This document shows positions 3,621-57,200 of a stretch of 64,000 nt of DNA, in pieces; within the stretch, counting starts at the first letter, position 1, and each line of letters starts with the position of its first letter. The position numbers and the translations under genes are program-made. The stretch comes from Lepidodermella squamata (Eukaryota; Animalia; Gastrotricha), in the NCBI GenBank assembly GCA_047495785.1, contig JBLDXI010000029.1, positions 1,984,001 through 2,048,000 of the forward strand, written 5' to 3'. The notes beneath the pieces were generated by a model. That model saw only the letters and a program-made list of their open reading frames with translations. It was not told where the DNA came from and made no database searches.

Positions 3621-4296
3621 AATGATTGACTCATGGTTGACTCATGGTTGCAGCACATCGTCCGGCAAAGCTACTTTTTAGTCTAGGGTATGTTGGCGTA
3701 AAAGTACGTAAAAGTTCACTTTTGCTAACACTACTTGCCGTTGCACAAAATCTTGATGCCTCCATGGCTCCCAAAAAGAGTCTGAAACCAGAAACGTATG
3801 AGAAAGCATAATTAGTTCTTGACCCAACTTCAACCAGTACTCAATTTATTAATGCCTCCGAACTTCATACATTCAAGTCGGACAGAATAGATTCTTGAAT
3901 TAAGTTCAATTTATTCCAATCGCTGTAACTACAGAACAATCAACGAGGAGATTATGAGAGGTGATGCCATGAGGGTGGCATTCAACAATGAGAATCCGGG
4001 AGGTATTCGGCCAAAAAATATTATATAAATGACTATGAAACTAGTTCCTGCATATTTCTTCCGGTGAAAGAGCCTTGGAAAGTGTGGATAATGTTTGGGA
4101 AATTAGTTTCGTTGTCTAAAAATTGGCTATAAATCCCGACAAAGTTCTAAAATTAAAGCCTTATCCGCAATGGATCTGTATTAAAATCGACTGAATATAA
4201 AATAATAAGAGAAAAATAAGCGAAAATGAATAAAAAAGACATTTTCGATTATTTTTTAAAGTTCTCTATCATACGAATATGTATAGGGTAAGTATT

Positions 4297-5977
4297 TCAG
4301 CAACCACATCTGTCTCCTCCACATCCTCCTCCTCCTCCACCACCGTCTCCTCCTCCTCCTCCACATCCTCCTCCTCCGTCTCCTCCACCACTGTACGCTT
4401 AAAAAGAGAGCAAAGAGAAAGGAAAAACGAGTACATACTAGGAGAGTCAAAAATAAGGGAATTGCGACTTACCCCGGTCTTCGCGTTGCCGTTCCTGCTC
4501 TGCTTCGATCTCCTGCTGCACTTCAGGGTCGTCATTATATGCAGCAGGAAGGCAGCACATCCACGATGAGTATAAAGCCGGTTTTCCAATCAGTTGTCGA
4601 TTGCTGCATTTGCAACACATCGAGAACCAAACGATGATGTAGCTCCTTGTCAACAAAGATTGAACTGCGACGATTGCCCAGCCGATGGGCCATGAAATCA
4701 ATAAAGTATGTTCGAAGCATGGTCTCGTTAGAGTGTAGATGAATCCGAAAAGGAACGATGTGTACAATATAGCCAGAAGAACATCCTGCAGTAAAACACA
4801 TAACGTTAAAAGTTATAGGAAGCCTTTGAAAAGATGCTAAGTTACTTTCTTAGTATAGGAAAGTATAGGCACATAAATCTACATATAATTTGTCCATTTT
4901 TTAACACCACGATGCATCCTAGGCTCCAAAAAAGAGTTAGAAACCAGAAACCATATGAGCCAGAAACCAGAAAGCATTTTGCCTAACTTCACCTTGCCTT
5001 GCCTTGCACTTACCTACCCAATTTGAAATGACGCGTCCGAGCTTCGATAAATTAAGTCGCACCGGTAGCGGGTCAATCTAGTTTAGTCCTGTTGGGGAGT
5101 CCGAAGCGTGCCCGTTCACGCTACGGCAAGCCCGAGCCCGTCGGGGAATCAGTGTTTTGCCTGTCCGCGCCCGGGTCGCTTCAATAAAATACTGCCTTTG
5201 CGCAACGTCTATGCTAAATCGAATGGATTTAAACAAAACTCGCATAAGCGAACGCGGGCAAGCGCAGGTGCTAAGCCGGGTGCGGGTAGAGAGCAATAGG
5301 TAGGCCAGTGTATTGCTGTGCGCGCTCAACTCCGCCGTGTTCGGGCATCAGGTTGCGACACCCGAGAGCGAAGGGCGATGATCACAGGCACGATCGTCGG
5401 CGGCTCAAGTGCGGACAAGCGTTCAACAATAGCACGGGTTTCCATTGTTTCCCGGCATGCTGGGCCCAAAACCTCACTTGGCCCGTGTGCATTGAAGCAA
5501 GATTTGGTTGAAAAAAATCACTCCTACCGAAAACATATCGTAAGCCCAGCTGTAGCACCTTTTGACCAAAAGCTGCAAGACAGCGGCCGCAGAAGGCCCA
5601 AAACGGATTGCAAAAACCCATGCCGACAGTAGCCAATGCTGATAACGCTGCATAGCGCAGTTTTTGGCAGCTTTGTCTTCGTAACGGTTTAGATCGACGA
5701 TGTGGGCTATCGAAAGAGCCATGAATACTAAGTTGAGTAAAAGCTGTAGCAGTCTTGCGATTCCATAGCCTGATCGCAGCCTAATACAAATTAAGCCAGG
5801 TTCCTTTTTCATGATGGGCAAGTGTGCTGGAACGCCCGGCATCGCTATGACGTAAACTTCCGGTCGATGAGTATCGAACAGTTGCCAATTCCGATGAAAT
5901 TGGCAAGCAGGTGGAGAAAAAGCTTGAAACGGAATTGAAAATGTGTCGATTGAGTAAAAAGCGCAAGCATGGTGCAT
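4297..5977 (-). CDS. Tetraspan family copy G2, apparently intact; exons 5977-5528, 4785-4473, 4397-4297
   Basis: All exons open with canonical splice sites; tail AYSGGGDGGGGCGGGGGDGGGGGGCGGDRCGC*. The usual start codon is ATT here, but an in-frame ATG lies at 5977. Confidence 0.75.
5089..5505. mobile_element. Degenerate GC-rich element related to the TGT...ACA MITE at 23691, in intron 1 of G2
   Basis: Begins ctgttgggg and ends with sequence resembling 24081-24160 (ccattgtt...ggcccgtgtgc...tgaagc..gattt). A homologous relic lies at 43277-43605. Confidence 0.55.
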
Positions 5978-6264
5978 TTAAATAGCTGAAGGCATCGTGA
6001 CAAACTCATGCCTGTAATCGCGTAATCGCTCTTAATTCAGAGCTTCCGATTTGGCTGAACTTTTGGTGGCAGGTTAGAGAACCGCTATACGCCACTGCGA
6101 AGGGCTGTCTATCAGCCTAGATTGACTAAACACTACATTCCTGTTCTTGCTTATAAAATGACAATTAAGTTATTTTTTTCAATGACTCGTGACTCACATT
6201 CAACTAACGTAAATGTAAAAATACTAACCCTGGTTTTTAGCAAATTTAGTAGTATGCAGTTAAT

Positions 6265-6600
6265 CACAGTCTCCTCGCAGTGCGCACTGCTTCCTCGCAT
6301 TGTCGTCTCCACAGGTCACGTCCCAATGCAGAACCTCGAAGTCAAGCCCCGGCTTAGCTCCTCATTGAAAGCGATTCTCAGCCAGACCTTTCGTGGAAGA
6401 CATCGGAAAGCATCCAACTTGTTGACGTCAGTCCTTAGTTAGCGCCATCACCCCGAGCCATATAACGAGACCGTCCAGTTGTTGACACGCAGAATTTCTT
6501 CAGTCGAGAGGCTATATTCATTTGAGCTCTGCTAAGGCTGATGATACTGCCAAGTTATAAAATGGCTCCACTTTTTCTCACGTTCTTTTACGCCTCAACC
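6265..6600 (-). mobile_element. RTE-clade non-LTR retrotransposon 3' relic
   Basis: Broken translation gives LGSIIS...INKLDAF..CL..ivW...NEEL, typical of the RTE RT C-terminus. Paralogous relics at 44350-44600 and ~31770-31950. Confidence 0.65.
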
Positions 6601-9115: not shown

Positions 9116-10131
9116 TGAAAATATATGAATCAAGCATGCTCATGCGAGTTGCTTGATTCAAAGAATGTATTAGGTCTGACTCATACCTGAGTGAAATTGT
9201 TCTCAAGTTGCGACATAACAAGTCTTCAGATTTAGCGGAACATTTGGTTTATAACATTGGTTGACACGTTTAAGATCCGCTACACATCAAGCTAGTGCAA
9301 AGAGCTACGCATGAGCAAAGACTGACTAAATGCAACACTTCTATATACTTTTTACGTATATACATGTATATTTCTGTTCTATAGTTTTAGTGACTTTTGG
9401 AGAGCAGAGAGTCGTTTTTTCCTGCTTCATTACTCATGGATCACAGCGAAACTGATAAAAATTTCGACTTTGCGCTCGTCCCTCTGATTGCTTCCGGAAA
9501 GCTTGGCATTTGGCAGGAGACGTAGCTAGGACGCCGAAGCTTGATCCCTGCCATACAAAGTGACACGTTGGTGTTATGCATGATTCTGAACACTTTACCT
9601 TTTGCAAACATTAAATTTTCAGGGTTCAATAAAAATAATTAATTCCTGAATTTAATAAATCGAAGTGGATGTTCGTACATAATTATGTACAACTATTTAA
9701 CTATTCATACAATTCAGTCACAATTTTCAAATTTCCGCTAGATGATAAAAAGAGCACGAACATTTAATGAGGTGATTCATCTCACTATTTTCAAAAAGCG
9801 ACCTTTGACACTAATTATTCTAAATTATTCTAAATATTTGCCGAGGAAGCAGTAAGTGACGCCTCAAATCCTGTTTCCTCAAAGCTTGTCGCTGAACTTT
9901 CTGTTGTTGCGAGAAAATGGCTTGATTTAGCCCTGAAGAGGAACACCTGAAATGCCTTTATTTAGGTACAAAATGAGGACAGTAAATCGTCAAGCCTTTT
10001 CAGCTTCTTTAAAAGCGATTCAGATTAATACGATTAGCTGGTTATTGTCTGAAACAAGCTCAGCAGGCCAAGCTAAGCAACTCAGCTTAATAGTCGTCAA
10101 GTCCCGCGTATTCCATTGCTGAAACCTATTT

Positions 10132-11741
10132 TTAGCCACCACCACATCCTCCACATCCACCTCCACATCCTCCACCACATCCTCCACCACATCCTCCTCC
10201 GCCATCACCTGCACCACTTGCCGCTTGAAAAAACAAAGAGACGAGTTTCAAATATCTGAGACTCATAGATAGGAGAATATGACTCACCTCGCTTCGCGCT
10301 TTGCAGAGCCATCTCTGCTCTTATCAGCTGAACTTCAGGTTCGGCCGCGTAGGCAGCAGATAGGCAGCAGATGCACGTGTTAACCGAGTAGTGATCTGGT
10401 TTTCCAACCAGTTGTCGATTGCTGCATTTACAACACATCGAGAACCAAACGATGATGTAGCTCACCGTCAGCAGAATTTGAACCGCGAAGATTGCCCAGC
10501 CGATAGGCCAGGATATCAAAGTATGTTTGAAGCATGGTCTCATTAAGGTGTAGACAAATGCGGCAAGCAACGGTATGTACAATATCGTCAAGAGAATATC
10601 CTTTAAAATATATCACATTTCAGGAAGCTCCATCAGTGATTGTTCGCAGTTGAAAAAATCTATATGTCCAAACAGTAATAAAACTCACCGAAACCATATC
10701 GTAAGCCCAACTGTAGCAGGTTTTGACCAAGAGCTGTAGGACAGCGACCAAGACACCGATGAAAGACGGCGCAACTACCCATCCTGAGTACAGCCAATCC
10801 TGTGGACCAACTTTGTCTTGATAACGGCTCAGATCGACCATATAGACTATTGATAGAGCTATGTATAAAATGTTGAGCGTAAGCTGAAGCATTCGGGTGA
10901 TTCCATAACCTGAATGCAGTCTTATCGAAATTAAACTCGGTTTAGGTTTGACATCCTCAACATCAATTACGGATGGCTGGGATAGAATGTTCGGCCTCGC
11001 TATGGCGTAAACGTGCGAACGGTGATCAGTGATGAACCGTTGCTCGCTGCGATGAAATTGGTGGGCAATTGGAGGATAATTATCAACACGTCGGTGAATA
11101 GATGGCTGTTGCTTGTTGCGATGACATGGGTGAGGTTGAGGAACAGCTTGAAAAGTGTGGCGCTGGCTGCTTCTAGACTCAGAACAGTAGTTGAGGGCCA
11201 TCGTTGACGCTCGTGGGGTGACGATGGTGGCGCTCGTCGCCTTAACGGTCGGTTTGGAGCGCGCAACGAGCCTCTGAGACGGCGCAACCCTGGCACGCTC
11301 GCGCTTGTGTAACGCCCGGATCGCTAAATACAAGGCGTGGCGCCGACGCTTTTCAGGGCCGTCATCCATCTCAGCCAATTCTCTGCCTTCCGATTTCAGC
11401 CAGTCTTTGCGAGCATCAGGCGGCATTCGTTGTAGCCGCCTCTCGAGTTGCCGGTCCAGGCTGTCAGCGCGGGCGTTGGGCCGAGCACTCTGTTGCAAAG
11501 ACCAGACGCCCTCATGCTTGCGAGCCAGGGACGTTTGGTGTTCCCATTCGGGCGTAGCAGGTTCATAAGCACCACGAGTTGCGGCTGAACGACTTCGGCG
11601 AGGCTTTCTCAGAGGCGAATGTGCTGTTACGGCGAGCATGGTGCCCTTGGAGGGACTTGTAGTGAACGTTGAGTCCCCGCCCGTCGCTGGCGGGTAAGTC
11701 ATAAGCGTCTTGGGAGTTTTTGTTGTCTTCTTGCCGGTCAT
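10132..11741 (-). CDS. Copy G4 with long basic N-terminal extension; exons 11741-10689, 10600-10288, 10223-10132
   Basis: Open 373-aa ORF ending in the family exon 1; exon 2 has an AAG acceptor; tail AASGAGDGGGGCGGGCGGGCGGGCGGCGGG*. Confidence 0.75.
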
Positions 11742-12164
11742 GCTGCTTTGTCCGGACGATGCACCAGTTGTGGTGTTGGCTGCTTATGGAATGAAAAGAA
11801 GACGTTTCGTCGAGAAGCAGATTCCAATTTATTTAAAAGCACAAGACCTGGACGGGAAATTGTTCAAAAATGAAAATATCACACACAAAAATGGGCGCGG
11901 TCGCCTCAAGGACAGATGGAACTGTTAGCCGGGCGAGATGGAAAATACGGATTCTCAGTCTGAGGATCTACACAAAATGTGGCGTGGATTGAATAAGTGC
12001 AGTCCAGGCACCTAAAAAGAGCCTGCATGCATCATTGCTGACTCATTCCTGAGTATATTCGCCCTCCATGTTATTTGGCTGAATATACGGCATGTTTCGT
12101 GTTTCTAGTTACTGGAAATTTGGTTACAATTTTGATGGCAAAACTGACAATACACTCATTTCCG

Positions 12165-12335
12165 ATTTCACATGGTGAACCAAACGATGATGTAGCTCAT
12201 CGTCAGCAACGATTGCACTGCGACGATCGCTCAGCCGATGGGCCTCGAAATCAAAGTATGTTCGAAGCATGGTCTCGTTAAGTTGTAGACAAAGCCGGCA
12301 AGAAATGGTACGTATAATATAATTAGACGAAAATT
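12165..12335 (-). pseudogene. Orphan 5' half of exon 2 (G5)
   Basis: Homologous to exon 2 (TRPCFEHTLIS.PIG*AIVAVQSLL), with an in-frame stop, truncated and without exon 1. Confidence 0.8.
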
Positions 12336-12423
12336 CTGTAAAAAACATAGCTGTTTAATTTAGTGAACGTTTCGTGGACGACTTTCCGTACGGCACCGAT
12401 TGAACTGCATCTTAGTCTGGATA

Positions 12424-12614
12424 TGCAGTGTCAAAGTCCAACTACTTGTTGCTGGGTCGGTCGCGATAGTGGGGCTGGTAGGGTTGGTGGGTGTGAATTT
12501 TTTTCACACTATGTTAATCAATTGATAGAATCGCGTGCTGCCAAGCCCCATTGATCCCATTGATGCTATCATATCGACCATCAGAGCAACACGTAGTTGG
12601 ACTTTGACTCCGCA
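12424..12614. mobile_element. Small MITE-like element
   Basis: Inverted termini gtcaaagtccaactac / gtagttggactttgac. Confidence 0.5.
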
Positions 12615-13212: not shown

Positions 13213-14325
13213 TTAGCAACCTCCTCCTCCGCATCCCCCTCCGCCTCCACATCCTCCTCTTCCTCCACCACATCCCCCACCACTTGCCGCTTGAAAAACA
13301 AGAAGAAATTGCGGGTGAAAACAAAAACTGAGTGTTCAGTGATATATTCATCTAAGACTTAACGATAGGATTTACTTTGCATTGCGTTTTGCCTATCTAT
13401 CTCTGCTCTCTCCACCTGAACTTCAGGGTCGTCCGCATAGGCAGCAGAAATGAAGCACATGTTAACTGAGTAGTGATCCGGTTTTCCAACCAGTTGTCGA
13501 TTGCTGCATTTGCAACACATCGTAAAGCAAACGACGAAGTAGCTCACCGTCAGCAAAGACTGAACTGCGAAGGTTGCCCAGCCAATGGGCCAGGATAGCA
13601 GCTCATGTTTGAAGCATGGTCTCGTTAGAGCTTGGAGAAATCCGACAAGGAACGATATGTACATTATGGCCAGAAGAATATCCTATAAAATATCTTGTTA
13701 AAATAACAACAAACATTTAAAGAAAATCTCATAGAAGCTCCGCCACTTAGTTTTTGCAATTCAATAAAATAATCTGTATATCAAAAAAGGTGTGAGCGAA
13801 TCCGCCACGGAACTGTATGAATAATATGGTCACGAGAATATCCTGGGACAGAAAGGGACGCATTTTGTATGTATGTTGATTTCTAATGTTTAATAGAAAG
13901 CGTATATCTCTCAGCGAAGTCATATTGTAGGCCCAGCTGTAGCATCTTTTGACCAAAAGCTGCAGAATAGCGGCTAAAATGCCTAAGAAAGACGGCGTGA
14001 TGATCCATCCTGAGTACGGCCAATTCTGCTGTTGTAAATTCACCGCATCAACTTTGTCTTTATAAAGGCTTAGATCGACGATATAGACTATCGCTAGAGC
14101 CATGTATACAATGTTGAGTACAAGTTGAAGCAGTCTTGCGATTCCATAGCCTGATTACAGTCTTATTGAAATCAAGCTCGGTTTAGGTCTGACTATCTCA
14201 ACATCAATGATGGGTGGTTGGGCGTAAATGGTGGGCCTGGCTATGAGACATAAACTGCCGGTCGAAGAGAAGCAAGCTGCTGCTCATTTTGCTCAGGACC
14301 GTACACCGCTAGCGGATGGGTTGAG
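13213..14325 (-). pseudogene. Copy G6; exon 1 5'-truncated with a dead donor; exons 13682-13376 and 13289-13213 intact
   Basis: Exon 1 donor reads tcg|CTgag instead of GT, with a 2-nt insertion in AVYV(I) and no promoter. Tail TASGGGCGGGRGGCGGGGGCGGGGC*. Confidence 0.7.
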
Positions 14326-18343: not shown

Positions 18344-18358
18344 TCATGGCTGACTCAT
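18344..18358 (-). promoter_or_regulatory. Conserved 4-codon uORF (ATG AGT CAG CCA TGA) overlapping an AP-1 site TGAGTCA; representative of 13 copies
   Basis: Same element at 3631, 9170, 12032, 25886, 32950, 39304, 46695, 49650, 51576, 53844, 56709 and 57015. Confidence 0.6.
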
Positions 18359-18469
18359 TCCTGAGCATGAACAACGTGTTTTCTAAGTCGGTTAGTTCAA
18401 TATCTATGTTCAATATAAATGTTTGCGGGCTCAATATACCTTAGAAGATACTCCGAGGAGCAATGCATT

Positions 18470-18507
18470 AGTCAAGACTGACTAAATGTTTGATTCCGCC
18501 TTTTATA
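18470..18507 (-). promoter_or_regulatory. TATA box + Initiator core promoter of the family (G9)
   Basis: Minus strand TATAAAA-N15-TTAGTCAGTC, with TATA 28 nt upstream of the Inr A. Same spacing at 57158-57189; related motifs near 6120, 9320, 26025, 46820, 51690, 53970 and 56852. Confidence 0.7.
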
Positions 18508-19362: not shown

Positions 19363-20147
19363 TTATCCTCCTCCACTGCATCCCCATGTAGATTCCCATT
19401 TAAATCTCCGACCACTTGCATCCTGAAAAACACACAGAGAACACATCAGAGACTTAGTGATAGGAAATTGTGACTTACCTCGAATTGCGCGTTGCCGAGC
19501 GATTTCTGCTCTCTCCAGCCGAACTTCAGGGTCGGCCGCGTAGGCAGCAGAAAGGCAGCACATTTTAGGTGAGTATCGATTTGGTTTTCCGACCAGGTGT
19601 CCGACCAGCAAACGATGATGTAGCTCATCGTCAGCAACGATTGCACTGCGACGATTGCCCAGCCGATGGGCCATGAGATCAAAGCATGTTCGAAGCATGG
19701 CCTCGTTAGGGTGTAGACAAAGGCGATAACGAATGGTATGTACAATAAAGTCAGAAGAAAATCCTGTAAAAAATGAATTTCAAAGAGAGGTCTTATTTTC
19801 GCAATTGGATATAATGATCTTTGAGACGAACAATACAGTGCTGAATCTTTATAACGAACTTCTTTAATGCTAGTAAAAAATGTTCGTTATAACAACAATT
19901 TGTTATGAAGATTCTGCATCAAAATCATATCGTAAGCCCAGCTGTAGCACGGTTTGACCAAAAGCTGTAGGACAGCGGCCAAGAGACCGAAGAAAGACGG
20001 TGTAATGACCCATCCCGAAAATCGCCACTGCTGATAGCGTCGATACAGTTCGAGAGATCTATCGTTATGCAGAGCGCCATCTTTGAGCTATTTATCTTCA
20101 TAGTGGCTCAGGTCGACTATATTGACTATTGCTAAGGCTATGTACAT
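19363..20147 (-). pseudogene. Copy G10, decayed
   Basis: Exon 1 is 5'-truncated and has lost its donor; exon 2 lacks FTMCCKCSNRQ and is frameshifted; exon 3 is out of phase. Confidence 0.8.
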
Positions 20148-25080: not shown

Positions 25081-26439
25081 AAACATATTGTCTCGGAGAA
25101 GCTCCACCAGTTTTCGCAGTTCAATCAAATAATCTTTAGGGCGAAACTATAAATGGGTTAATTAAAGCTCTCTTACCGAAGCCATGTTGTATGCCCAGCT
25201 GTAACATCTTGGAGACAAAAGCTGTAGGACAGCGATCATTAGGCCGAAGTAAGACGGCGTGATGACCCATACTGAGTACAGCCAATTCTGCTGTATTAAA
25301 TCCTCAGAACCAACTTTGACAGCTTCATCTTCGTAGCGGGTCAGATCGACAATATAAGCTATTGATAGAGCTAAGTATACAATGTTGAGTACAAGCTGTA
25401 TCAGTCTGGCGATTCCATAGCCTGATCGCAGTCTTATTGAGATGAAACTCCATTTAGCTTCGGCATGCTCGACATTAATGATGGGTGGGTGTTCCTGAAT
25501 GGTGGGTCTCGCAATGACGTATACTGCCGGCCGATTATCAGTGATCTGTTGCTCGCTGCGATAAAACTGTTTAACAGGTGGAGAATTATAAACCTCGGGC
25601 GGATGGGGTTTATTATCGAACTGCTGGTCGCCGGGATGAAATTGGAGAGCAAGCTGGGGATAATTATCAACTTGTTGCTGAATAGCTAGTTGTTGCCCAT
25701 AGCGATGGAATCGGTGAGCAGATGGAGGAGCAGCTTGCAGCGTCATGCAATATTTTGTGAGAATTCGATATATGTTTTCAAGGGGCACCTAAAACGTTCA
25801 CATGAAAAAACACCTAAATTCATGCAAAAAGTAACCAAGCTTTTGTAGGAGAGTATTTTTATGTATTATTATGCAGCTGAAGGCATCATGGGTGACTCAT
25901 TTCTGAGCGTAGCCTCCCTGCGGCTATTTCCTGAATCGGTTTATTTGTATTTGTTGGAATTTGGTTTAGCTTTTGTGGGAGATTTCTCTTGAAGCTGCTC
26001 TAATGAGCTGTGCATGAGTCAAAACTGACTAAATCCTTTTATTAGCTTAAATAATAAGGAGCCGTCATTTCTCTAAGAATTATGACTTATGAATCACAGT
26101 TAACAATTTCCTTTGTAATGCTAGAATCAGCTATGGGCATTACTTCTCACGGTGTTGGGTTCGATGATCCTTCCGACTCATATTCATTTTTGCGAGTTGC
26201 CCCGGATATGTGTAAAGCCATTAAACCATTCAGGCTACTTCAGCTAAGATTTTGTAAAAAAATGCTGGCGTCCGAATCGAATTATTATTCGTGTATTATC
26301 GAAAAAGCTTTATCGAATTTCTGCACAGTGATTCGTATTCGTTAATTCCTTCAAATGGTACCATGATAAGGATTAGGTGCAGATGAAAATTTAACAACGA
26401 GTTGTTCCATGTAAATGTTTTTGTTACTAATTGTCTTCG

Positions 26440-32877: not shown

Positions 32878-33445
32878 CCAAAATGTTTTGTAGATTGGAT
32901 ATGAGTGCAGTTGAGGCGCATTGAAAAAGCTGCAGGCATAATCATTGATTCATGGTTGACTCATGGTTGCAGCACATCGTCAGGGAAAGCTACTTTTTGA
33001 GTCTTGGGTATGTTGGCGTAAAAGTACGTAAAAGTTCACTTTTGCTAACACTACTTGCCGCACTGCAGGTATAATGCTTAACTCATGGCTGCAGCACATC
33101 GCCGAGGAAAGCTAATTTTTTAGTATATGGTATGTTGATGTAAACGTTCGATACTGCTTGTTGTTGCACAAAATCATGATGCCTCCTTGGCTCCCCAAAA
33201 AGAGTCTGCAACCAGAAACCGTATGAGAACGCAAAGGTTTTCGATCTAACTTCAACCAGTACTCAATTTATTGATGCCACCGAACATTGTAATATATTCA
33301 AATCGGACGAATATATCCTTGAATTAAGTTCAATTTATTACAATCGATGTGAGACCCCCTATTTTGTGTCTGTGATAGGAAATGTAGGATATTATAATCA
33401 GCTGCAACCTTCGAATCCTCCGCCTCCTTCTCCGTCGCATCCTCA

Positions 33446-35486: not shown

Positions 35487-35531
35487 TGGAAATGTGCGAA
35501 TTAAATATACGCGCATGCGAGGTGCATTTAA

Positions 35532-36036: not shown

Positions 36037-36390
36037 TTAAATAGTTGAAGACTAATTATCTTGTAATCGCTTTATCGCGCTTAAATTAGAGCTTCCGATT
36101 TGGCTGAACTTTTGGTGACAGGTGCGCTATAGGCTACGGTGAAGGGCTATGTATCAGCCTAGACTGACTGAAGGCTAAATTCCTATTATTTGCTTATAAT
36201 GACAATTCAGCTATTATTTCCGTTCTATGACTCGTGGGTCACATTCAACTAACGCATGTCAAAATACTAACCCGAGCTTATGCTGCAAATGTATGCTGCG
36301 CCTCATCTCCATACCAAAATCTCGCTATTATGCCAACTGGTTTATTTTGAGCAGGCTACTAGCTCAGTCCATAGCTAAATTAGATCTTAA

Positions 36391-39247: not shown

Positions 39248-40330
39248 AGAAAATTCATGAATTAAAATGCTTATGCGATGTGCTTTATTCAAAGCTGAAT
39301 GTATCATGCCTGACTCATTCCTGAGTGAAATCGTCCTCAAGGTAGAGCTTTACACTCGGCTGAACATTTGGTGACCAGTTTATTACCAGCTACACAACAG
39401 CCTACTGCAAAGAACTACGTTTGAGCAAAGAGTGACTAGGTGCAACACTTTCTCTATAACATATTTTCATGTATACTTATGTGTTTTATTTATATATACA
39501 GTGACTATTGAAGAGTCATTTTTTATGGTTCATGACTCGTGAATCATTGCGATAACAGGATAGCAAATAGTTGTGCATTATTATATGAATTATGTTAGTC
39601 CTGGTTGTCGCACCAAAGTTCACAACAGTTATGAGATTGGACTGTTCTCTGTCAAAAATGCAAGTGAGGTCTTCGCATAAATTGTCTATCCCATACCCGC
39701 TTTTGTACGCGTTCCTAATATTGAAGTCAATTATTACCCTGCCCATGTGGATAATTCCTTCATGCTTTCTATATTCATAACACGAATACGTTTGCAATGA
39801 AGTCCGTGTGGTTTCTTTAACTTGCGTTTTATTTTGAAAAAGACATGATCCTAGCGAAAAGCAGCCGAGAGTAGCTAGCAACCACTGGGAAAGGGCGATA
39901 AATAGCAGAGCTAAATAGTAAGCAGCTGCATATTTTAAACGCGATAAGATGTTTCAGCAACCACCAAATCCTCCTACTCCTCCTCCTCCACCACCAACAC
40001 CGCCCACGCCACCACCAGCAAATCCACCCCTTCCTCCGGCCGTTACAAAAAACAAACAGAAAGGGACATTGAAAACACAAACTACAACAGCGAAGTCAAC
40101 ATAGTCAGTGATACAGAAAATAGTTCTTCAATCGGGAACATGTTGGTACATGGGTATTGATTTAGGAAATTTAAAAGAACATGTCTTACCACAAACTCGT
40201 TTCTCATTTTCCTCATGCGTATGCGAGGAAACACATACACACGAAGCAAAAAGCATACAGCCCCCGTTCACAAACTGAAATTTTCCTTCAACCTGTATAT
40301 ATTTTTTCCGACCGGAGATGCCACTGAAAA

Positions 40331-44100: not shown

Positions 44101-44349
44101 GGCATCGTGACTCATGCCTGTAATCGCGCAATCGCTCTTAATTTAGATCTTCCGATTTGGCTGAACTTTTGGTGGCAGGTTAGAGATCCGCAACGTATCA
44201 GCCTAGACTGATTGAACACTACATTCCTCTTATTTGCTTATATAATGACAATTAGTTTATTTTTCTATGACTCGTGGATCACATCCAACTGGCGTATGTG
44301 TAAAAATACTAAACCTGACATTTATGCAAATTTAGTAGTATTTAGTTAA

Positions 44350-46634: not shown

Positions 46635-47648
46635 TGAAAATACATGATTTCAGAATGCTCATCATGCAATGGAATTCATTCAAAGCTAAATGTATTACGT
46701 CTGACTCATTCCTGAGTGAAATCGTTCTCAACTTAGGGCTTCACATTTGTTGAACATTTGTTGACAGCTTTGTGATCCGCCACACAACAGACTACTGCAG
46801 ATAGCTACGTATGAGCAAAGACTGACTAAATGCAACACTTCTATATGTATAACATATTTTCATGTATCATTGTGTGATTTACTTATTACTCATTATACAG
46901 TGACTATTGAAGAGTCGCTTTTTTCTGCTTCATGACTCATGAATCATAGCGATAACAGGATAGTAAATAATATTATATGACTCATAGTTTGTCCTGGTAT
47001 TCGTAACAAAGGTGATACCCCTTTTTCGCGCGGCGGCCAATGTTCGAATTAATCGAAAGGCGACTAAAAAATCAAGTTCCACTTTCCGAGCCAAGGCACA
47101 ATTATGACTTCCTGGTCACTGAAGGTTCGATGTCGTTATTACAGACGCGTAATTGATTTTGACAAGTCTGATGTTAAAGATTCCCCATGCTTCCAAAATG
47201 GCGTCAAATTAAATTGATTTTTTTGCACAGTAATAAGCAGATTAATTACAAAACGCATCGCTTGTTTGGCCTTTACTCACTCTTGCGCGGCCTAAAGCAC
47301 ATTGTCGTAGATAGCCTTTATCTAGGCACATTGTGATACAGGCTCATTTTGTGTAGAATAACATTCGATTATATTTCGAAGATATATTTGCCAGAGAACA
47401 TTGGTTGCTGCCTAGTTAATTCCTCCTGATTGAGAGGAGTGATTCTCCTATGATTGAGGCTAAAACACGATACAGAAATAGTGTTTCTGTATTCCTGTAC
47501 AATACAGAAACACTTTTATTAAGATGGACTTTTTATTATCGCATTTTCCTATATAAATGGCGTACAAGATCACTTTTTCCCGCACTTTCTAGCTACGTTT
47601 GTCCGAGTTTTTAGCAGATACAGAGGAGAAAAGCAATCTCGGATTTAC

Positions 47649-49577
47649 TCAGAATAAAGAAACACTTTTCTTGTACGAATGACTGTATGAATCGAGGTTC
47701 CGCAGGAACCGAAGATGAATACAGTCATGAGTATTGAAAAAAAGAGAAATTGAGAGTGAAAACAAAAACACGAGCGAAATCTGAGTGATAGGAAAAAATG
47801 ATAATTTACCTCGTATTGCGATTTGCCGATCAATATCCGCTCTCACCAGCTGAACTTCAGGGTCAGCCGCATAGGCAGCAGAAATGCAGCACATGTTAAC
47901 GGAGTAGTGATCCGGTTTTCCAATCAGTTGCCGATTGCTGCATTTGCAACACATCGAGAACCAAACGATGATGCAGCTTATTGTCAGCAAAAATTGAACT
48001 GCAAAGATTGCCCAGCCGATGGGCCAGGATATCAGATTATGTACGAAGCATGGTCTCGTTAGAGTGTAGAGAAATCCGGCAAGGAACGATATGTTCAATA
48101 TGGCCAGAACAATATCCTGTGAAATATGGCAACTTAACTTTTCAAAAAAGCCTCTTAGAAGCTCTGAATTCGATCAAATAATCTGTAGGGCAGAAAAATA
48201 AGTTGGTTGAATAAGCACACTTACCGAAACCATGTCGTAAGCCCAGCTGTGGCATCTTTTGACCAAAAGCTGTAGGACAGCAACCAAGAGGCCGAAGAAA
48301 GACGGCGTAATGACCCAGCCGGAGTATAGCCAATGCTGCCGTAGTCGATACTCATCGCCAACTTCGACAACTTCGTCTTTATAAAGGCTCAGATCGACGA
48401 TATAGGCTATCGCTAGAGCCATGTATGCAATGTTGAGTAAAAGCTGAAGCAGTCTTGCGATTCCATAGCCTGATCGCAGCCTGATTGAAATTAGGCTCGG
48501 TTTAGGTTTGACATCCTCAATATCAATCACTGATGGCTGTGATTGAATGTTCGGCCCCGCTATGACGTAAATCGCCGACCGAGGATCAGTGAACTGCTGC
48601 TCGCTGCGATGTAATTGGTTAGCAGAATCATAAACAGCCGATCGATTGATGTTATTATTGATCTGCTGGTTGCTGGGAGAAAGTCGGTAAGCAAATGGAG
48701 GATAATTGCGATGAAATTGGTAAGCAGGTGGTGAATCAGGTTGAAACGTGTGCTGGTGTCTGCTTCTAGACTCAGAACGGTGTGGAAGGGCACGCGTTGA
48801 TGCTGGGCGACTGACTGGGGTAGCGCTCGTCGCTTCAACGGCCGGCTTTGGTCGCGCCACGGGGTCCTGAAACGGCGCAACCCGGGCACGCTCGCGCTTG
48901 TGTAAGGCCCGGATCGCTAAATAGCGGACGTGGCGTCGTAGCTTTTCGGGGCTATCATCCAGCTCAGCCAATTCTCGGCGCTCTATTTTCAACCAGTCTT
49001 TGCGAGCATCAGGCGACATGAGTTGTAGTAGCCAATCAAGTTGACGGTCCAGGCTGTCGGCGCGGGCGTTGGGCCGTGTACACCGTCGGGGAGAGCCAGC
49101 GGCCTCACGGGTGAAAGCCGTCGTTTGCAGTTTCGACTCGGGCGTAACGGGTTCATAAGCGCCACAGGTTGCAGCAGAACGACTCCGGCGAGGCTTTTCC
49201 AGAGGCAACTGTGCTGCAGCTGAAGCGGCCGGCTTGAGCTTGTCCTTGGAGAGACTTTTATTCAACGTTGAGGCCCCGCCCGTCGCTGGCGGGTAAGCCG
49301 TAAGCGTCTTGGGCACCTTCGTTTTTGCTGCTGTTTTCTTGCCGGTCATGTTGCTTTTCTCGGCCGATCCACCAGTTGTGGCGGGGACTGGTTCTAGAAT
49401 CAAAACGAGACGTTTCGTCGAAAAGCAGCTTTTATTTTATTTGATAAAACAGGCCCTGAGCGGGAAATCGTTCAATAATGAAAATATCATACGAACAGGT
49501 GGACACGTTCGCATACCGGGTTCGTGGGCAGGTGGAGCAGTTGGCCGGACGAGATAGAAAATAAGACTGGTTCTCAT
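47649..49577 (-). CDS. Copy G18 with captured N-terminal domain; putative exons 49577-49517, 49393-48225, 48116-47810; Gly/Cys exon lost
   Basis: 409-aa ORF paralogous to G4. An upstream mini-exon MRTSLIFYLVRPTAPPAHEP splices in phase (gtatgc...tag). The exon 3 acceptor is replaced by unrelated sequence; read-through stop at 47649. Confidence 0.65.
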
Positions 49578-50146
49578 TCTGAGGATCTACGCAAAATGCG
49601 GCGTGAATATTGGATACGTGCAATCCAGGCGCATAAAAAGCTGAATTCATCATGGCTGACTCATTCCTGAGTGTATTCGCCCTCATGTTATATTTGGCTG
49701 AATCGGTTTGTTTTTATTCGTTGGATAGTTGGTTGAACTAAAAAGGCATGTTAAAGGCTGGAAAAACACTTTCCGGTTTTTCACACACAGAGTGATTCCA
49801 TTCTCAAATAATGATATATTATCAATAGGTATTAGTTGATTATAATATTGATGCACCAGCACATTCAAAGCAATAGTACTGATACAGTGTGTCCTCATGA
49901 TAAGCCGAAATATTTTGCAATATCGCTTTTCTTGCCCTGTAAATCATGGGTAGTCATGGGTACGACCCATCTAGCTAACCAATCAGCAGATTCTTTTCAG
50001 CTTACAACCTCAAACGAAATGCCTGAGTAAATAATTGAACAAAAGGTCATTAATGAAGCGTGAGATATCAAGTTATTTCGTCTAATTATTGCCGAAAGCG
50101 GTGTAATTTTCGCTTGTTTCATCATTTCATCGCTTAAACCCCTTTC

Positions 50147-51517
50147 TCAGCAACCGCCTCCTCCGCACTCTCCCCCTCCACAACCTCCTCCTCCGCCACA
50201 TCCGCCTCCTCCTCCACCACATCCGCCTCCTCCTCCGCCACATCCCCCTCCGATTTCCCTATTAATTGCCGCTTAAAAACAGAGAGACGAGTTAAAAACA
50301 CAAAAAAATTGAGCGATAGGAAATGATGACGTACCTTGAATTGCTCTTCGCCGAGCTATCTCCGCCCTCTCAAATTGGACTTCTGGGTCGGCCGCATAGG
50401 CAGCAGAAATGCAGCACATTATAGTTGAGTATCGCTTCGGTTTTCCGATCAGTTGTCGATTGCTGCATTTGCAACTCATCGTGAAGCAAATGATGATGTA
50501 GCTCAATGTCAGCAACGATTGAAGTGCGACGATCGCCCAGCCGATGGGCCAGGATATCAGATTATGTTCGAAGCATTGTCTCGTTAGAGTGTAGACAAGG
50601 CCGGCAAGAAATGGTACGTATAAAATGATCAGAAGAAAATCCTGTAACGAAATTAGCATTACATTTTATGGAAAGTATTGTACAAGTTCTACTGTTTCGG
50701 TCAGATAAAACAATACAGTGCAGCATCGTTACTACGAACTCCTATAATGCGAGTAAAAGTTCGTTTTGAAAGTTCGTTATAGCGATTCTGCACTGGATTT
50801 TGATCATAGCTCTCCTACCGAAATAATATCGTAAGCCCAGCTGTAGCAAGTTTCGACCAAAAGTTGCAGGAGCGCGGCTATGATGCCGAAGAAAGACGGC
50901 GTAATGACCCAGCCCGAGTATAGCCAATGCTGCCGTAGTCGATACACATCGCCAACTTTGACAACTTTGTCTTTATAAAGGCTTAGATCGACGATATAGG
51001 CTATCGCTAGAGCCAAGTATGCAATGTTGAGTATAAGTTGAAGCAATCTTGCGATGCCATAGCCTGATCGCAGTCTAATTGAAATTAAGCTTGGTTTAGG
51101 TTTGACATGCTCAACATCAATGGTGGGTGGTTGTGTGTAAATAGTAGGTCTTGCTATTACATAAACCGCCGGCTGATGAGCAACAGCTCGCCACTCATCA
51201 GCCGGCTGGGGATCGGGTGGAGAACCATAAACCGCTGGCCGATGGGTCGAGAACTGTTGGTCGCCGGGATAATATCGGCGAGCGTGTGGAGGATAATTGT
51301 GAACCGACCGATGAATGGCAAACTGTTGCTCATTGCCATTAATTTGGTGAGCAGATTGAGGACCATACACCGCTTGTCGATGGTTAGAGAACGGCTGGTC
51401 GCCGGAATGAAATCGGTGAGCCAGTGGTGGATAATTTTGAACCGGCCGATGAATTGCGAACTGTTGCTGGTTGCGATGAAATTGGTAAGCAGATTGAGAA
51501 GCAGCTTGAAGCTCCAT
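50147..51517 (-). CDS. Copy G19, intact; exons 51517-50819, 50641-50335, 50271-50147
   Basis: Open and canonically spliced; longest N-terminal repeat tract; Gly/Cys tail with six Cys ending GGGGC*. Confidence 0.85.
50716..50795. mobile_element. 80-bp Tc1/pogo-like mini-MITE in intron 1 (shared with G10 at ~19836-19920)
   Basis: ta|cagtgcagcatcgtta...tatagcgattctgcactg. Confidence 0.5.
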
Positions 51518-52979
51518 TGAACATTTTGTGTGAATTGGATACGTGGATTCGAGGCGCATTTAAAAGCTGATTTCATCATGGCTGACTCATTCCTGAGCGT
51601 CATCGCCCTCAGCTTGGTTTATTTTAATTTATTGCAGATTCGAGTGAAATTTTGGTCTTCACTCAAATCTGCATCTCTGTATGAGTCAAGACTGACTAAA
51701 TGCTTAAATCATTCAGTATATTTACCGATGGTTACCTGATTTGAATAGCACTCTTCGTACAGGATTTTAATGCTTGATTTTCATGTTCAGTACATTAGGA
51801 GAAAAAATCTTTTCACTTAGGTTTTGAACCGCCTTGACATCCGAAAGCGCAGCCAAATGGGCCAGGCTAAAAGTTTTGCTCTCCAACAGGCAATTAGGCC
51901 GAGATTGGACTTTGCAAACAGGATGCATGATGTATTTCGTCTTTCAAATACTTCTGGGGGCTTAACTTATACATGGAACGTAAGGAGGGATTGATGTATG
52001 AGCACGCAGAGCGCTATTACAACTATACCTATATCACGTTCGCTACATTGGCAACGAATGAGTACTGAGTCATTCATGACTCAAAGCCACACTTTTTCAG
52101 TACTATAGGCCACATAGCGCCTCCGGAGTTTTCAACAAATAATAAGCAGATGTAAATAGCGTTGCCACTTTTGGCACGAGATTTAGCTTTTTCCGACTTA
52201 AAGAGTCTAAATGGCTGCATGTCGTATTTTCTGAAATACTAACCCGGCTTGTGCAAAATTGAAGCTTCGAAAACTAGTAAAACTTAGGCTTCTATTCAAG
52301 ACCAGGCTTCTCGAGATAGGGCTATGCAACCCGGAAGCAGCCAAGTCAGTCTTTCAACACTCAGCAGTTTTGAAGCACGAAAACACGCATCCCGCCTGTA
52401 TAACGTCTGGGCCGATAGGACGATTTCGACCACTTAACCAAAATCAAGGCAGCGCTGTCGAAAGTTGACAAAATTATACACACTATAGTCATTGAGACTA
52501 TGCCGGACACTGTAGTATTTTTTGAATGACCGGATAATGAGATGAGGTTACCTTAATTTCAATTTGAAAAAAATCGGAATTTCACACCTCGGTTACCAAT
52601 TTTAAAATAGCCATATTTTCAAAACCGTGTAGGATAGCGGTCTGATTGTTTCAAATTCTTGTAGCCAACATCGATAAGGAGTATTGCTAGAAAGGGCGAT
52701 CAAAAATAAATCAAAATGAAATGTTGGTGCACTGTCGAAGTCAGAATTTCGAAATCGCCCTTATGGCCATTTTAGGGTTAATCTTTGACCCGCGCGCTGA
52801 TTGGTCAATTTTTTTGCTATGACTCCGGGATGAAACAATTTAGTAACCTTACCCTAGATGCGATCTGAGTTTTAAAAAATGGCAATTAGCGTTCTTTTTT
52901 CAACTTCAACTTCAAACGAAATTTCTGAGTAAATAATTGAACTTGAGACTTAAGTTTATTTATGAAGCATGAGAAGCAT

Positions 52980-53317
52980 CATTGTGGAACCACTGGTAAG
53001 TTGAACCTTGGCGCGCACGCTGATTGGTCAGTTTATCGTTGCTAATGACTCCGGAATGAAACATTTCCGTCGTGCGATCCACTAATAAATTATTTTATAT
53101 TTATGAAAAAAATGACCTTGCCACACCCTCTGCCCGGTTTCCATTGACCACGAGCGTAAACTCCATATTAATTGTGGTAAATTGCTGCGGCAAAAAACAC
53201 TTGTTGCAAAAAATCTTATGGATCGCACGACAGAACGTTTCATCCGGGAGTCATAGCAACGATCGATTGACCAATCAGCGTGCGCATTGGATTGGACTTT
53301 TAAGTGGTCACACAATG
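52980..53317. mobile_element. CMC/EnSpm-like MITE, complete copy
   Basis: AT|cattgtggaaccact...agtggtcacacaatg|AT. Confidence 0.8.
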
Positions 53318-53719
53318 ATCAAGTTATTTTTTCAAATAATGCCGATGGCGATGTGTTTTTCGCCTGATTTTTATTTTTTTACGGGGTTTCCCCCATCACA
53401 TAACAGCTAAATCGACATATGGGTACATGAGTACATCTTATTCATTTCGTTTCAATCAGGGCAGCACCGTTACCAATCGAGTTTCTTCAATTCGATTCAA
53501 TGATTTGCGGGCAGTATCAGGAATTCGATAAAAAACATTCCAACAACCATGTAGGTATAAACCAATCCTAAGAATTATGTTTGCAAATGATTCATGGATT
53601 TGGTAAAAAGCTGAGTCAAGGGTACGAATCGACGTACGGCTATTTCAACTTACAACCTCAAACATAAAACACAATGCCCGAGTAAATAATTGAACACAAG
53701 TTTAATATACAAATTATAC

Positions 53720-54330
53720 AGGGCGTTCACATGAATATACTCAGAATGAGCAAAAATAGCTATAAAAACCTTCTATGCATGCAACAAGTAGTCAAGCTTT
53801 TGCAGGGAGAGTATTGTTATGTATTATTATGTAGATGAAGGCATCATGGGTGACTCATTTCTGAGCGTAGCCTCCCTCCTGCTATTTCCTGAATCGGTTT
53901 ATTTGTATTTTTTGGAAATTTGGTTTAACTTTTAGTGGCAGACTTCTCTAGAAGCTGTGCATGAGTCAAGACTGACTAAATGCTCAATTCCTTTTATCAG
54001 GGCTGCAAAACATGCGGAGCTTTCTGCGCAGAAACTCCTATTTTCCTATGAAATACCCAATATCACAATTTCGTGGTGAAAATTGATAAAAGCAATCGAA
54101 GTCGAAAATCGCTAATCACCGATAATCGAAGTCGATCTGGAATATCAAAAAACTGATAGCGCCTTTGAATTCCCGTTGAATTCGGCTTAATTTCAAAAAT
54201 TTCCTGCGCTACCCATGCGCCATTTCTGCATGTTTTGCAGCCCTGCCTTTAATAAGCTTGAAAAATGAGGAACCGTTATTTCTCTAGAAATTATGACTTG
54301 AATCACATTCAACGATTTCCTTTGAAATGC
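53720..54330 (-). pseudogene. Orphan promoter/5' leader of the family without a CDS
   Basis: Colinear with 25790-26130 (G11 upstream), including the uORF at 53844-53858. Confidence 0.75.
53998..54245. mobile_element. hAT-type MITE inserted at the TATA position of the orphan promoter
   Basis: TIR cagggctgcaaaacatgc / gcatgttttgcagccctg; TSD ccttttat / cctttaat; empty site at ~26035. Confidence 0.85.
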
Positions 54331-55424: not shown

Positions 55425-56648
55425 TTAGCAACCACCTCCGCAACCGCCCCCTCCGCATCCTCCTCCACCTCCGCATCCTCCTCCACCCCATCCCCCACCA
55501 CTTGCCGCTTAAAAAAAGAGAAATTGCGAGTGAAAACAAAAAAAGAGTGTTCAGTGATTCGAATATCAGACTTTCCTGATAGGATTTACCTTGCATTGCG
55601 CTTTGCCTATTGGCCGTCTCTACAATCTCCAGCTGAACTTCAGGGTCGGCCGCATAGGCAGCAGAGAGGCAGCACATGTAAACGGAGTAGTGATCCGGTT
55701 TGCCAACCAGTTGTCGATTGCTGCATTTGCAACACATCGTGAAGCAAACGATGAAGTAGCTGACCGTCAGCAACGACTGAACTGCCAATATTGCCCAGCC
55801 GATGGGCCAGGATATCAGATTATGTTTGAAGCATGGTCTCGTTAGAGTGTAGAGAAATCCGGCAAAGAACGATACGTAAAATATGGCCAGAAAGATATCC
55901 TGTAAAATATGGCCACAAAGTTTTTAAGAAAATCTCGTAGATAGTTTTCGCAATTCAATCATATATTCTGCATATGAAATCAGGTGTGAACAAATCCACA
56001 AAGGAACGGTATGAAATAATATGGTCAGGAGAATATCCTGGGACACATTATGTATATTAATTCCTAATTATTAACAGAAAAACATATATCTCTTACCGAA
56101 GCCCTATTGTAGGCCCAGCTGTAGCACCTTTTGACAAAAAGCTGCAGGACAGCGGTTAAAATCCCGAAGAAAGACGGCGTGATGATCCATCCTGAGTACG
56201 GCCAATTCTGCTGTAGCAAATTCAAAGCACCAACTTTGTCTTTATATAGGCTTAGATCGACGATATAGGCTATCGCTAGAGCCATGTATGCAATGTTGAG
56301 TATAAGTTGAAGCAGTCTTGCGATGCCATAGCCTGATTGCATTCTTATTGAAATTATGCTCGGTTTAGGTTTGACATGCTCAGAATTCATGACGGTTGGG
56401 TGTGCTTGAATGGTGGGCCCCGCTATGACATAAATCGCCGGTCGATGAGAAACAAACTTCTGCTCATTTTGTTGAACTTGGTTGGCTGGTCGAGAATCAT
56501 AAACCGCTGGCTGATGGGTAGAGAGCTGGTTGTCGGGTTGAAATTGGGTAGCGACTGGAGGATCATTATGAACCGGTTGATGAATTGCGAACGGAGGCTC
56601 ATTGCCATATAATTGGTGAGCAGATGGAGGAGCAGCTTTAAGCTCCAT
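55425..56648 (-). CDS. Copy G20, intact; exons 56648-56097, 55899-55590, 55507-55425
   Basis: Open and canonically spliced; tail AASGGGWGGGGCGGGGGCGGGGCGGGC*. Confidence 0.85.
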
Positions 56649-56905
56649 TCAAAATGTTGAATGAATTGGATATATGTGGATTCGAGGCGCATTTGAAAGC
56701 TTGAGGCATCATGGCTGATTCATTCCTGAGCGTGAACAACGTGTTTTCTGAGTCGGTTTGTTTAATATATTTTGTTGGAATTTCGGCTCAGCTTCCGGTA
56801 GTGGGTTTTATATACCTTAGAAGATACTCCGAGGAGCTATGCATTAGTCAAGACTGACAAAATGTGTAATTCCGCCTTCTATAGCATTTGTAATGACGAC
56901 TGGGA

Positions 56906-57200
56906 AGCTCATTGCCATTTAATTGGTGAGCAATTGGAGGAGCAGCTTGAAACGGCATGGAAAATGTTCAAATGAATTGGAAACGTGCAGTCGAGGCGCA
57001 TTGAAATAGCTGCATCATGACTGACTCATTCCTGAGCATAAAAAACGTTTTTTCTTAGTCGGTTCGTTTAAATTTTGTTGGAAATTTGGTTTAACTTTTC
57101 ATAGCGGATTTAATTTACCTTAATGGAAGCTACTCCGAAGAGATAAGCATGAGTGAAGACTGACTAAATGTTCAATTCTACCTTTTATAGCTGATGTAAT
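56906..57200 (-). pseudogene. 5' fragment G21: promoter, uORF and first ~17 codons (MPFQAAPPIAHQLNGNE)
   Basis: Tandem duplicate of the G20 upstream region, joined at the gggaagctc microhomology. Confidence 0.75.

Follow-up and report, generated by a model that had tools for sequence, protein, structure and literature searches.

The ATG-containing motif that recurs upstream of an orphan family of tandemly arranged genes for four-pass membrane proteins is probably a family-specific composite bZIP promoter element acting at the DNA level, and the short upstream open reading frame (uORF) spelled by its letters is probably a by-product. In the predicted composite, the conserved 5' flank CTCAGGA precedes an invariant AP-1/bZIP-type heptamer, A-TGAGTCA; a spacer of 4 nt that is free to vary then leads to a second conserved block with the consensus TGATGC. 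The ATG would consist of the preferred 5' A and the TG of the heptamer, and the "stop" of the TGA with which the second block opens. Two half-sites 11 bp apart would thus yield the four-codon ORF as a by-product. The first-pass annotation had read the motif as a conserved uORF under stress-dependent translational control and had named a DNA element, GGAATGAGTCA, as the alternative. The sequence evidence favours this alternative over a translational switch, because variation tracks heptamer, spacer and second block, the pattern recurs in inverted orientation, and AP-1-like heptamers are about 9-fold enriched.

The window (the whole 64-kb stretch of DNA that was analysed) contains 12 copies of ATGAGTCA-N4-TGA/TAA on the minus strand, 69–87 nt (154 nt in one copy) 5' of start codons, and these exact matches stand at coordinates given in the first-pass annotation, which counted 13 leaders. 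The pattern ATGAGTCANNNNTRA was found 15 times in the window, compared with 0.07 matches expected from shuffles. Twelve of these lie on the minus strand (3631, 9170, 12032, 18344, 25886, 32950, 39304, 46695, 49650, 51576, 53844 and 57015) and three on the plus strand (26014, 51681 and 53961). Genome-wide, 196 matches were counted vs 87 for a reversed control, and since 15 of the 196 fall inside this 64 kb, the pattern was regarded as family-specific. A thirteenth leader (G21, 56709..56723, minus strand) reads ATGAATCAGCCATGA; as annotated, its heptamer is changed (to TGAATCA) and ATG and TGA are retained. One further, dispersed copy (C33) on another contig keeps the motif at only 60% protein identity. 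Four sense codons and a stop are present in the 12 copies, the G21 variant and C33. Near-matches on C1, C7, C10, C17 and C24 were rejected as instances of the same composite (dissimilar surroundings, no gene start behind them). Paired full heptamers showed no preference for a 4-nt spacer genome-wide, and the 11-bp pairing with the TGATGC block is particular to the family.

All features described below lie on the minus strand. In the representative intact copy G19, the proximal motif ATGAGTCAGCCATGA (51576..51590) comprises the AP-1-like heptamer, the 4-nt spacer and the TGA that opens the second block, here TGATGAA. The main start codon of this gene (51515..51517) opens the signature M-x-x-Q-A-A common to the family. 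The 15-mer of G18 (49650..49664) is identical. The second block reads TGACGCC in G8 (18344..18358), TGATACA in G15 (39304..39318) and TAATACA in G17 (46695..46709); TAA instead of TGA is found in G17 and G3 (9170..9184), in agreement with the first-pass annotation. In G4 (12032..12046) the motif is ATGAGTCAGCAATGA, the heptamer and GCA flank of which fit an NF-E2/ARE-type site. The motif of G10 (25886..25900) is the one located 154 nt from its start codon, owing to an insertion of approximately 80 nt 3' of the motif. Three of 13 motif copies precede broken or truncated genes, namely G1 (frameshifted), G20 (53844..53858; no more than a promoter, with a high-copy repeat behind it) and G22 (57015..57029; the downstream gene ends after 36 codons). 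Heptamer pairs 11 nt apart were found in G1 (3620..3645; two perfect TGAGTCA) and in G13 (32939..32964); both pairs stem from an 11-nt tandem duplication. In both copies the earlier count had taken the tandem duplicate, and the homologous heptamer is followed by TTA in place of a stop. The frame in G1 is therefore open; in G13 the homologous (downstream) heptamer is TGAATCA, and a TGA occurs one codon early, ahead of the TTA. This duplication of 11 nt (one helical turn) counts for a DNA element. The pattern is gone from the G2, G12, G14 and G16 copies, as had been claimed. G16 (44101..44115) keeps the heptamer, which is followed by a 4-nt deletion and no stop, and this copy looks degenerate.

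For the conservation analysis, the 13 homologous copies were aligned. Positions 1–4 and 6–8 (ATGA.TCA) and an upstream TCA are invariant; the heptamer is TGAGTCA in 11 of the copies and TGAATCA in 2. Every one of positions 9–12 varies, and the variable fourth codon described earlier is borne out in the motif copies. Conservation of positions 13 and 15–18 (T.ATGC) equals that of the "stop", the middle base of which is G in nine copies, T in two and A in two. This second block has the consensus TGATGC, and the "stop" is its first half-site, TGA. From -6 to +8, 10 of 14 columns are invariant, compared with 2 of the 28 other scored columns. Variation thus tracks heptamer, 4-nt spacer and second block and not codons, which favours a binding-site layout. 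The copies are paralogues of approximately six promoter lineages and therefore not independent. Coding-core branch lengths between them amount to 0.1–0.5 changes per site, and an 8-mer that stays invariant is therefore not neutral. The window holds 44 AP-1-like heptamers, 27 of which are located inside 14 promoter segments that account for 6.6% of its length (expectation 2.9, ~9-fold enrichment). The stretch running from CTCAG to the start codon is conserved in all intact copies, as no other part is; these copies include C33, G13, G4 and G18, which have no distal TATA box.

Approximately 100 nt 5' of the proximal motif, the 15-nt pattern recurs in inverted orientation in the distal elements of G10 (26014..26032), G19 (51681..51699) and G20 (53961..53979). 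The G19 element, TTAGTCA-GTCT-TGACTCAT, lies 103 nt 5' of the proximal motif and fits the "uORF" pattern if read on the plus strand; G20 has the same sequence, and the G8 element (18467..18485) reads TTAGTCA-GTCT-TGACTAAT. Being on the opposite strand, the inverted pattern cannot act as a uORF of the gene. Two candidate core promoters were recognized. The first is marked by the distal TATA box, TATAAAAGG in G8 (18499..18507, 28 nt before the A of TCAGTC) and in G22 (57181..57189). In about 12 copies the best canonical TATA box (TATAAAAGG, TATATAGAAG or similar) stands 5' of the distal element, in many of them 24–28 nt upstream. The second candidate consists of a weak TATA-like, T/A-rich box 10 nt after the motif (TTTTAAAT in G19, 51558..51565) and an Inr-like TTCA (51531..51534), conserved as (A/T)TCA 11–25 nt before the start codon. 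In several lineages the proximal box makes a poor TATA. Transcription starting at the proximal box and TTCA puts the motif 5' of the start site; a start at the distal TATA box does not, and the motif would then lie within the primary transcript, which counts against a promoter element. The leader of only 11–25 nt that results from a start at TTCA also counts against it. Histone H3 promoters, tried as a calibration of the TATA-to-ATG distance, were uninformative. TCAGT as a general initiator behind TATAAAAG was rejected, as it was not enriched (20 sites vs 144 for the reversed control).

In the genome, 14 bZIP_1 and 7 Maf/CNC-type matches were found for bZIP genes and one gene for the TEA domain; the Jun N-terminal family gave no match in a genome search whose control was uninformative. 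Under the preferred promoter-element reading, genome-encoded bZIP factors would bind the proximal sites and the second, inverted pair, TTAGTCA-GTCT-TGACTCA, about 100 nt further upstream, and could switch on the whole array together. Stress, injury or a developmental cue would be a plausible trigger. Transcription would most simply start 3' of the proximal pair, at the T/A-rich box and TTCA, so that control by stress, should there be any, would act on transcription and not on translation.

The main competing explanations place the motif in RNA. If M-S-Q-X-stop were translated as the first AUG of an mRNA that starts at the distal TATA box, or that receives a spliced leader at YAG/G three bases before the ATG, it would damp the main ORF or let ribosomes scan past nearby out-of-frame AUGs, its letters doubling as a transcription factor site. 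This is considered unlikely, even with the distal TATA boxes and the following observations on its side. CAG/G immediately precedes the motif in 11 of 13 copies (TTACAG/G in a divergent subfamily), and in lineages A and E its acceptor score of 6.6–8.7 comes near the 8.7–10 of the family's own intron acceptors. In all intact copies each heptamer ATG is closed within four codons, which holds across one change from TGA to TAA and, in G13, the gain of a stop, and open versions of the frame are found in degenerate copies; such closure is by our estimate only about 10-fold likelier under a stop constraint than by chance and counts against a promoter-only function. Translation, however, explains neither why AGTCA is invariant nor the spacer, which is not a codon. 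Acceptor-like quality is poor in G19, G18, G4, G10 and C33, the intact G13 has no AG before its first heptamer, any shielding would be defeated in G3 and G17 by further out-of-frame AUGs near the main start, and a TCAGT behind TATAAAAG is no general layout of promoters in this genome. Leaders from the distal site would also contain 4–8 upstream ATGs each. Between motif and TTCA site, 38 upstream ATGs were counted in 677 nt (0.056 per nt vs a background of 0.019, approximately three times commoner), the opposite of a scanned leader; as a locator of the start site, their density before vs after the TTCA site differs in the expected direction without reaching significance (p = 0.15), a point against the promoter reading. 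Hardly credible is the delayed reinitiation of ATF4/GCN4 type proposed in the first-pass annotation, by which a permissive uORF1 and an inhibitory, CDS-overlapping uORF2 would let eIF2-alpha phosphorylation raise main-ORF translation. The uORF1 of human ATF4 is likewise four codons long (PMC12839439). ATGs at +11 and +14 in G19, G21 and C33 open out-of-frame ORFs into the CDS, and the annotated ORF 51157..51603 is present and enters the coding sequence out of frame. The claimed second ATG at the stop was recovered: a second or third ATG overlaps the stop (ATGA) or shares its last base (TGATG), and the second lies 0–3 nt away. Its claimed out-of-frame overlap with the CDS was found in only 3 of 9 intact copies examined (the ATG at +11 in G19, G21 and C33). 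The second-ATG ORF stops short of the main start in the intact copies G8, G10 and G13 and in G22 and is in frame with the main ORF in G15, and the second ATG is absent from G3 and G17, so that its fate is not conserved across paralogues. A gap of 0–3 nt offers delayed reinitiation no scanning distance, and ribosomes would therefore bypass the second AUG with or without stress. In most copies the main ATG follows the stop after only 54–58 nt (139 nt in G10). The ATF4 layout was thus not upheld in two of its defining features.

There is little chance that the motif is an RNA-processing signal, in which CTCAG/GAATGAGTCA would supply the acceptor for trans-splicing or for a 5'-UTR intron, along with the first exon bases, and be kept for splicing. 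In G19 the CTCAG (51593..51597) is located directly 5' of the motif; it is conserved as YAG/G across lineages despite differing preceding bases (CTCAG vs TTACAG) and is acceptor-like in some lineages only. Good pyrimidine tracts were found in G8, G21 and G22, and a possible donor (AAG/GTATAT or AAG/GTAAAT) approximately 80 nt upstream in these three only; a search for a conserved donor in the remaining lineages found none. Further points against splicing are the weak acceptor scores of the five copies named above, the invariant downstream TGAGTCA, which acceptors do not require, and the inverted distal pattern, which is left unexplained. Nematode SL1 was searched for both as its Rfam family and by sequence, and no match was found. 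Two public sequencing runs were checked on 48100–54099. X2 is a DNA run of about 95-fold coverage from another individual; X1 (2015, guessed to be RNA) yielded patchy, 2–5-fold short contigs that also cover the predicted G18 intron and intergenic DNA. Neither run had a listed joint or loose end at the motif, and the short contigs gave no clear RNA signal. A dual use is comparably improbable: YAG/G would be a spliced-leader acceptor, mRNAs would begin with the leader followed by GA and AUG AGU CAN NNN UGA, and the motif would serve as bZIP site in DNA and as cap-proximal uORF in RNA. Very improbable is the absence of any function, i.e. a motif common to recent duplicates and homogenised by gene conversion. 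The copies are indeed paralogues of one array, with mosaic relationships (G3 clusters with G17 in its second domain). Against this, spacer and flanking promoter positions vary freely around the 10 invariant positions, the dispersed C33 keeps the motif, and degenerate copies have lost it.

Word-index protein searches for homologues in other species, run with exon 1 of G19 and of G17, returned none; an exact look-up of the G3 ORF and Pfam gave no match for the family. A motif scan of metagenomes returned one match, which was unrelated and attributed to chance. The motif is most likely an ordinary kind of promoter element. If so, it represents a clean family-wide promoter module with core elements and with bZIP-type sites that stand in pairs at two positions, predicts co-regulation of approximately 15 tandem copies of orphan membrane-protein genes, and provides a handle for finding the inducer of the array. 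To our knowledge, gastrotrichs are a phylum with almost no regulatory annotation. As a caution, an optimal AP-1 site (A-TGA-G-TCA) followed by another TGA half-site mimics a conserved mini-uORF. Wider interest would arise only under the minority reading that the motif lies at the 5' end of trans-spliced mRNAs; dual use, if true, would couple one stress pathway to transcription and translation of a whole gene array. We know of no description of trans-splicing or uORF control in Gastrotricha.

The element was compared with known systems. In ATF4, ribosomes scan roughly 90 nt between uORF1 and the second uORF. The family resembles ATF4/GCN4 in its four-codon first ORF 5' of the main ORF and, in some copies, an overlapping out-of-frame second ORF; it differs in lacking the spacing between uORF1 and second AUG, in its unconserved second ORF and in its AUG-rich leader, and presence of the motif in mRNA is putative. 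TEAD (GGAATG)/AP-1 and ETS (GGAA)/AP-1 composites occur in vertebrate and viral enhancers. Here GGAA(T) likewise abuts the heptamer and GGAATG is present in 9 of 13 aligned copies, and a TEA-domain gene exists, whereas three copies read GAAATG and others GGTATG, GGCATG or CCATG; since the TEAD and AP-1 cores overlap by the letters ATG, simultaneous binding is doubtful. NF-E2 or antioxidant-response elements, bound by CNC-small Maf dimers, read (A/G)TGA(C/G)TCAGCA. The G4 sequence is ATGAGTCAGCA, ATGA(G/A)TCAGC(C/T) is seen in five further copies, and Maf/CNC-type genes exist; GC thus follows the heptamer in 6 of 13 copies, with the full GCA only in G4. The GC flank is missing in the other 7 (GG, GA, GT, AA/AT, CC) and is therefore not defining for the family element. 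AP-1 or TPA-response elements, TGA(G/C)TCA, occur in inducible promoters of animals, frequently as several copies and in either orientation. The sites of the family are putative ones, and their fixed pairing with a TGATGC block at 11-bp pitch is particular to it. Alike are the exact heptamer with the preferred 5' A, conserved above its flanks, the several copies per promoter in both orientations, the position of the proximal pair 10 nt 5' of a T/A-rich box, and the bZIP genes of the genome.

The motif examined here consists of an AP-1-like heptamer with a preceding A (A-TGAGTCA), four nucleotides and a stop-like TGA or TAA, and had been read in the first-pass annotation as a conserved four-codon upstream ORF (uORF). 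Its pattern, ATGAGTCANNNNTRA, had 15 exact matches in the window against 0.07 expected. Twelve were on the gene strand, just where they had been annotated; downstream of each, at 69–87 nt (G10: 154 nt), comes a start codon from which the conserved M-x-x-Q-A-A is read. A thirteenth copy with mutated heptamer (TGAATCA) was recovered in G21 (56709–56723), as were the described codon-4 variants, the TAA stops at 9170 and 46695 and the loss of the motif in G2, G12, G14 and G16. In G1 and G13, the motif copy originally counted belongs to an 11-nt tandem duplication, of which it forms one half; TTA follows the homologous heptamer. The copies represent about six promoter lineages and are not independent.

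The window holds a tandem array of a single gene, with about 20 copies, every one on the minus strand. In each copy, an N-terminal Q/P/H-rich stretch is joined by four predicted membrane passes, divided between two exons, and by a short exon for a Gly/Cys tail. No Pfam match to the family was found, nor were relatives in word-index protein searches with single-exon, unspliced queries. In the whole 121-Mb assembly (published genome: 122 Mb, 157 contigs, 43% GC; PMC11660948), the family is found in this array, at about 20 kb upstream of the window, as a single copy on contig C33 and nowhere else. G1, G20 and G22 are broken or truncated. At 13909–16780, three near-identical units with identical scores in the genome search for the family lie head-to-tail; each has a TAA within its exon-1-like part and is preceded, in the promoter's place, by exon-2-like sequence. 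G18 (49349–49600) and G4 (11741–11990) carry GTAG in place of the ancestral start codon. In G18, a new ATG (49577) stands directly behind an acceptor-like CCTCAG, and a possible 123-nt intron (49394–49516) would link it in frame to a 409-codon ORF bearing a captured K/R-rich domain. An 844-codon non-LTR retrotransposon ORF (20657–23191, plus strand; endonuclease and reverse transcriptase) is inserted within the array and adjoins a family fragment at 19917–20147. The array is flanked by a 710-codon ORF (58630–60762, minus strand) with a weak ANF_receptor match; in the protein atlas, the clusters nearest to this ORF are class C GPCRs of the metabotropic glutamate or GABA-B type.

In gene sense, the promoters begin with a distal TATA box (TATAAAAGG, TATATAGAAG, TATATAAGC and similar; about 12 copies), followed after 24–28 nt by a distal element, TTAGTCA-GTCT-TGACTCAT, and after about 95–140 nt more by the proximal block CTCAGGA-ATGAGTCA-N4-TGATGCC-TTCAGCT. 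A T/A-rich box (TTTTAAAT, TATTTAAAT, TTTCAAT and similar) comes next, then about 30 nt later an (A/T)TCA site and 11–25 nt after that the start codon. Only the stretch from CTCAG to the start codon was found in every intact copy; a recognisable distal TATA box is missing in C33, G13, G4 and G18. G4 has the proximal block without the distal box because a truncated paralogue lies upstream, its exon-2-like coding sequence fused straight to the G4 promoter (12150–12250). The G14 promoter contains a foldback element (35526–36042; 173-nt arms, 99% complementary, 171 nt apart); the TTAA at its insertion point in the proximal T/A-rich box suggests a target site of piggyBac type. Just downstream of G20, a copy reduced to its promoter, lies a very high-copy repeat (52900–53300), with a summed word depth of 20,000–50,000 against about 95 elsewhere in DNA run X2. 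A further perfect heptamer pair with 4-nt spacer (TGAGTCA-TTCA-TGACTCA; 52066–52083) precedes the proximal motif of G19 by about 480 nt.

Two candidate boxes for transcription start were compared. By canonical standards the distal TATA box is the better of the two; a start from it would place the motif about 100–140 nt into a primary transcript with 4–8 upstream AUGs per leader, counted from the distal element. With the proximal T/A box and TTCA, the only elements common to all intact copies, activator sites, box, start and short leader follow one another in the classical order; several lineages have a weak box, however, and a start at TTCA would leave a leader of only 11–25 nt. TATAAAAG followed by TCAGT was rejected as a general design of the genome (20 sites vs 144 for the reversed control). 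Public run X1 gave sparse short contigs, also over intron and intergenic sequence (one 6,000-nt stretch examined), and run X2 is DNA of another individual. All ten histone H3 genes sampled (L007–L016) have TTGTCGGTT about 60–70 nt upstream of the start codon, and in half of them CAG|CA immediately precedes the ATG. The former may be a start-site motif, the latter a trans-splice acceptor.

Among the 13 homologous copies, the upstream TCA and ATGA.TCA are invariant. Positions 9–12 all vary, forming a 4-nt spacer across the boundary of codons 3 and 4. Positions 13 and 15–18 (T.ATGC) are as conserved as the 'stop', and therefore conservation extends through and past the stop as a second block, which in G1 is itself a perfect TGAGTCA. 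Nine copies have G as the middle base of the 'stop', two have T and two A. On the plus strand, the pattern's three matches correspond to the distal elements of G10, G19 and G20 in reverse; thus the heptamer, four bases and TGA occur twice per promoter in opposite orientations, and, judged from the sequence, one of the two cannot be a uORF. Promoter segments, 6.6% of the window, hold 27 of its 44 AP-1-like heptamers, an enrichment of about 9-fold. The genome encodes bZIP_1 factors, Maf/CNC-type factors and one TEA-domain factor; genes for bZIP proteins lie at C29:390823, C17:932617 and C21:360985. The conserved unit looks more like DNA sites than like a reading frame. It is probably a family-specific composite promoter element of bZIP type, in which a mini-ORF arises as a by-product of the letters; stress control of any kind would then act on transcription.

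A generic uORF that is translated but not of ATF4 type is unlikely. It would fit the closure of each heptamer ATG within four codons in every intact copy, the change from TGA to TAA in one lineage, and the gain in G13 of a TGA one codon early after the homologous triplet had turned TTA. Copies in which the frame is open (G1 at its second heptamer, G2, G16 and one upstream of the window) are damaged by frameshifts, premature stops or loss of the start codon. We estimate that a constraint on the stop makes these stop-keeping events only about 10-fold likelier than chance does. The 'stop' middle base changes most often from G to A, and of 27 single changes possible in the three codons before the stop, 3 yield a new stop. 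That the motif is an RNA-processing signal is improbable; CAG|G just before it is acceptor-like in lineages A and E (6.6–8.7 vs 8.7–10 for family introns) and of poor acceptor quality in G19, G18, G4, G10 and C33. Neutral sharing between recent duplicates has very little probability; C33, with only 60% protein identity, keeps the pattern.

In ATF4, a four-codon uORF1 precedes a long uORF2 overlapping the main ORF, and reinitiation hinges on the time to reacquire ternary complex while scanning between the two (PMC12839439). The first-pass annotation had proposed this layout; two defining features of the ATF4 family were tested and neither was found, and an ATF4-type switch is extremely improbable. 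The first ORF likewise has four codons, but each following ATG either overlaps the stop (ATGA) or has the stop's last base in common with it (TGATG), and therefore no scanning distance is left. The annotated ORF at 51157..51603 exists; such an out-of-frame ORF into the coding sequence is confined to G19, G21 and C33 among intact paralogues, whose next ATGs differ in fate, against an ATF4-type switch. The ORF ends before the main ATG in G8, G10 and G13, the ATG is in frame with the main ORF in G15, and G3 and G17 lack it. Between the motif and the TTCA site, upstream ATGs show no depletion (38 in 677 nt vs a background of 0.019 per nt). The composite promoter element is a new example of a kind of element that is already known.
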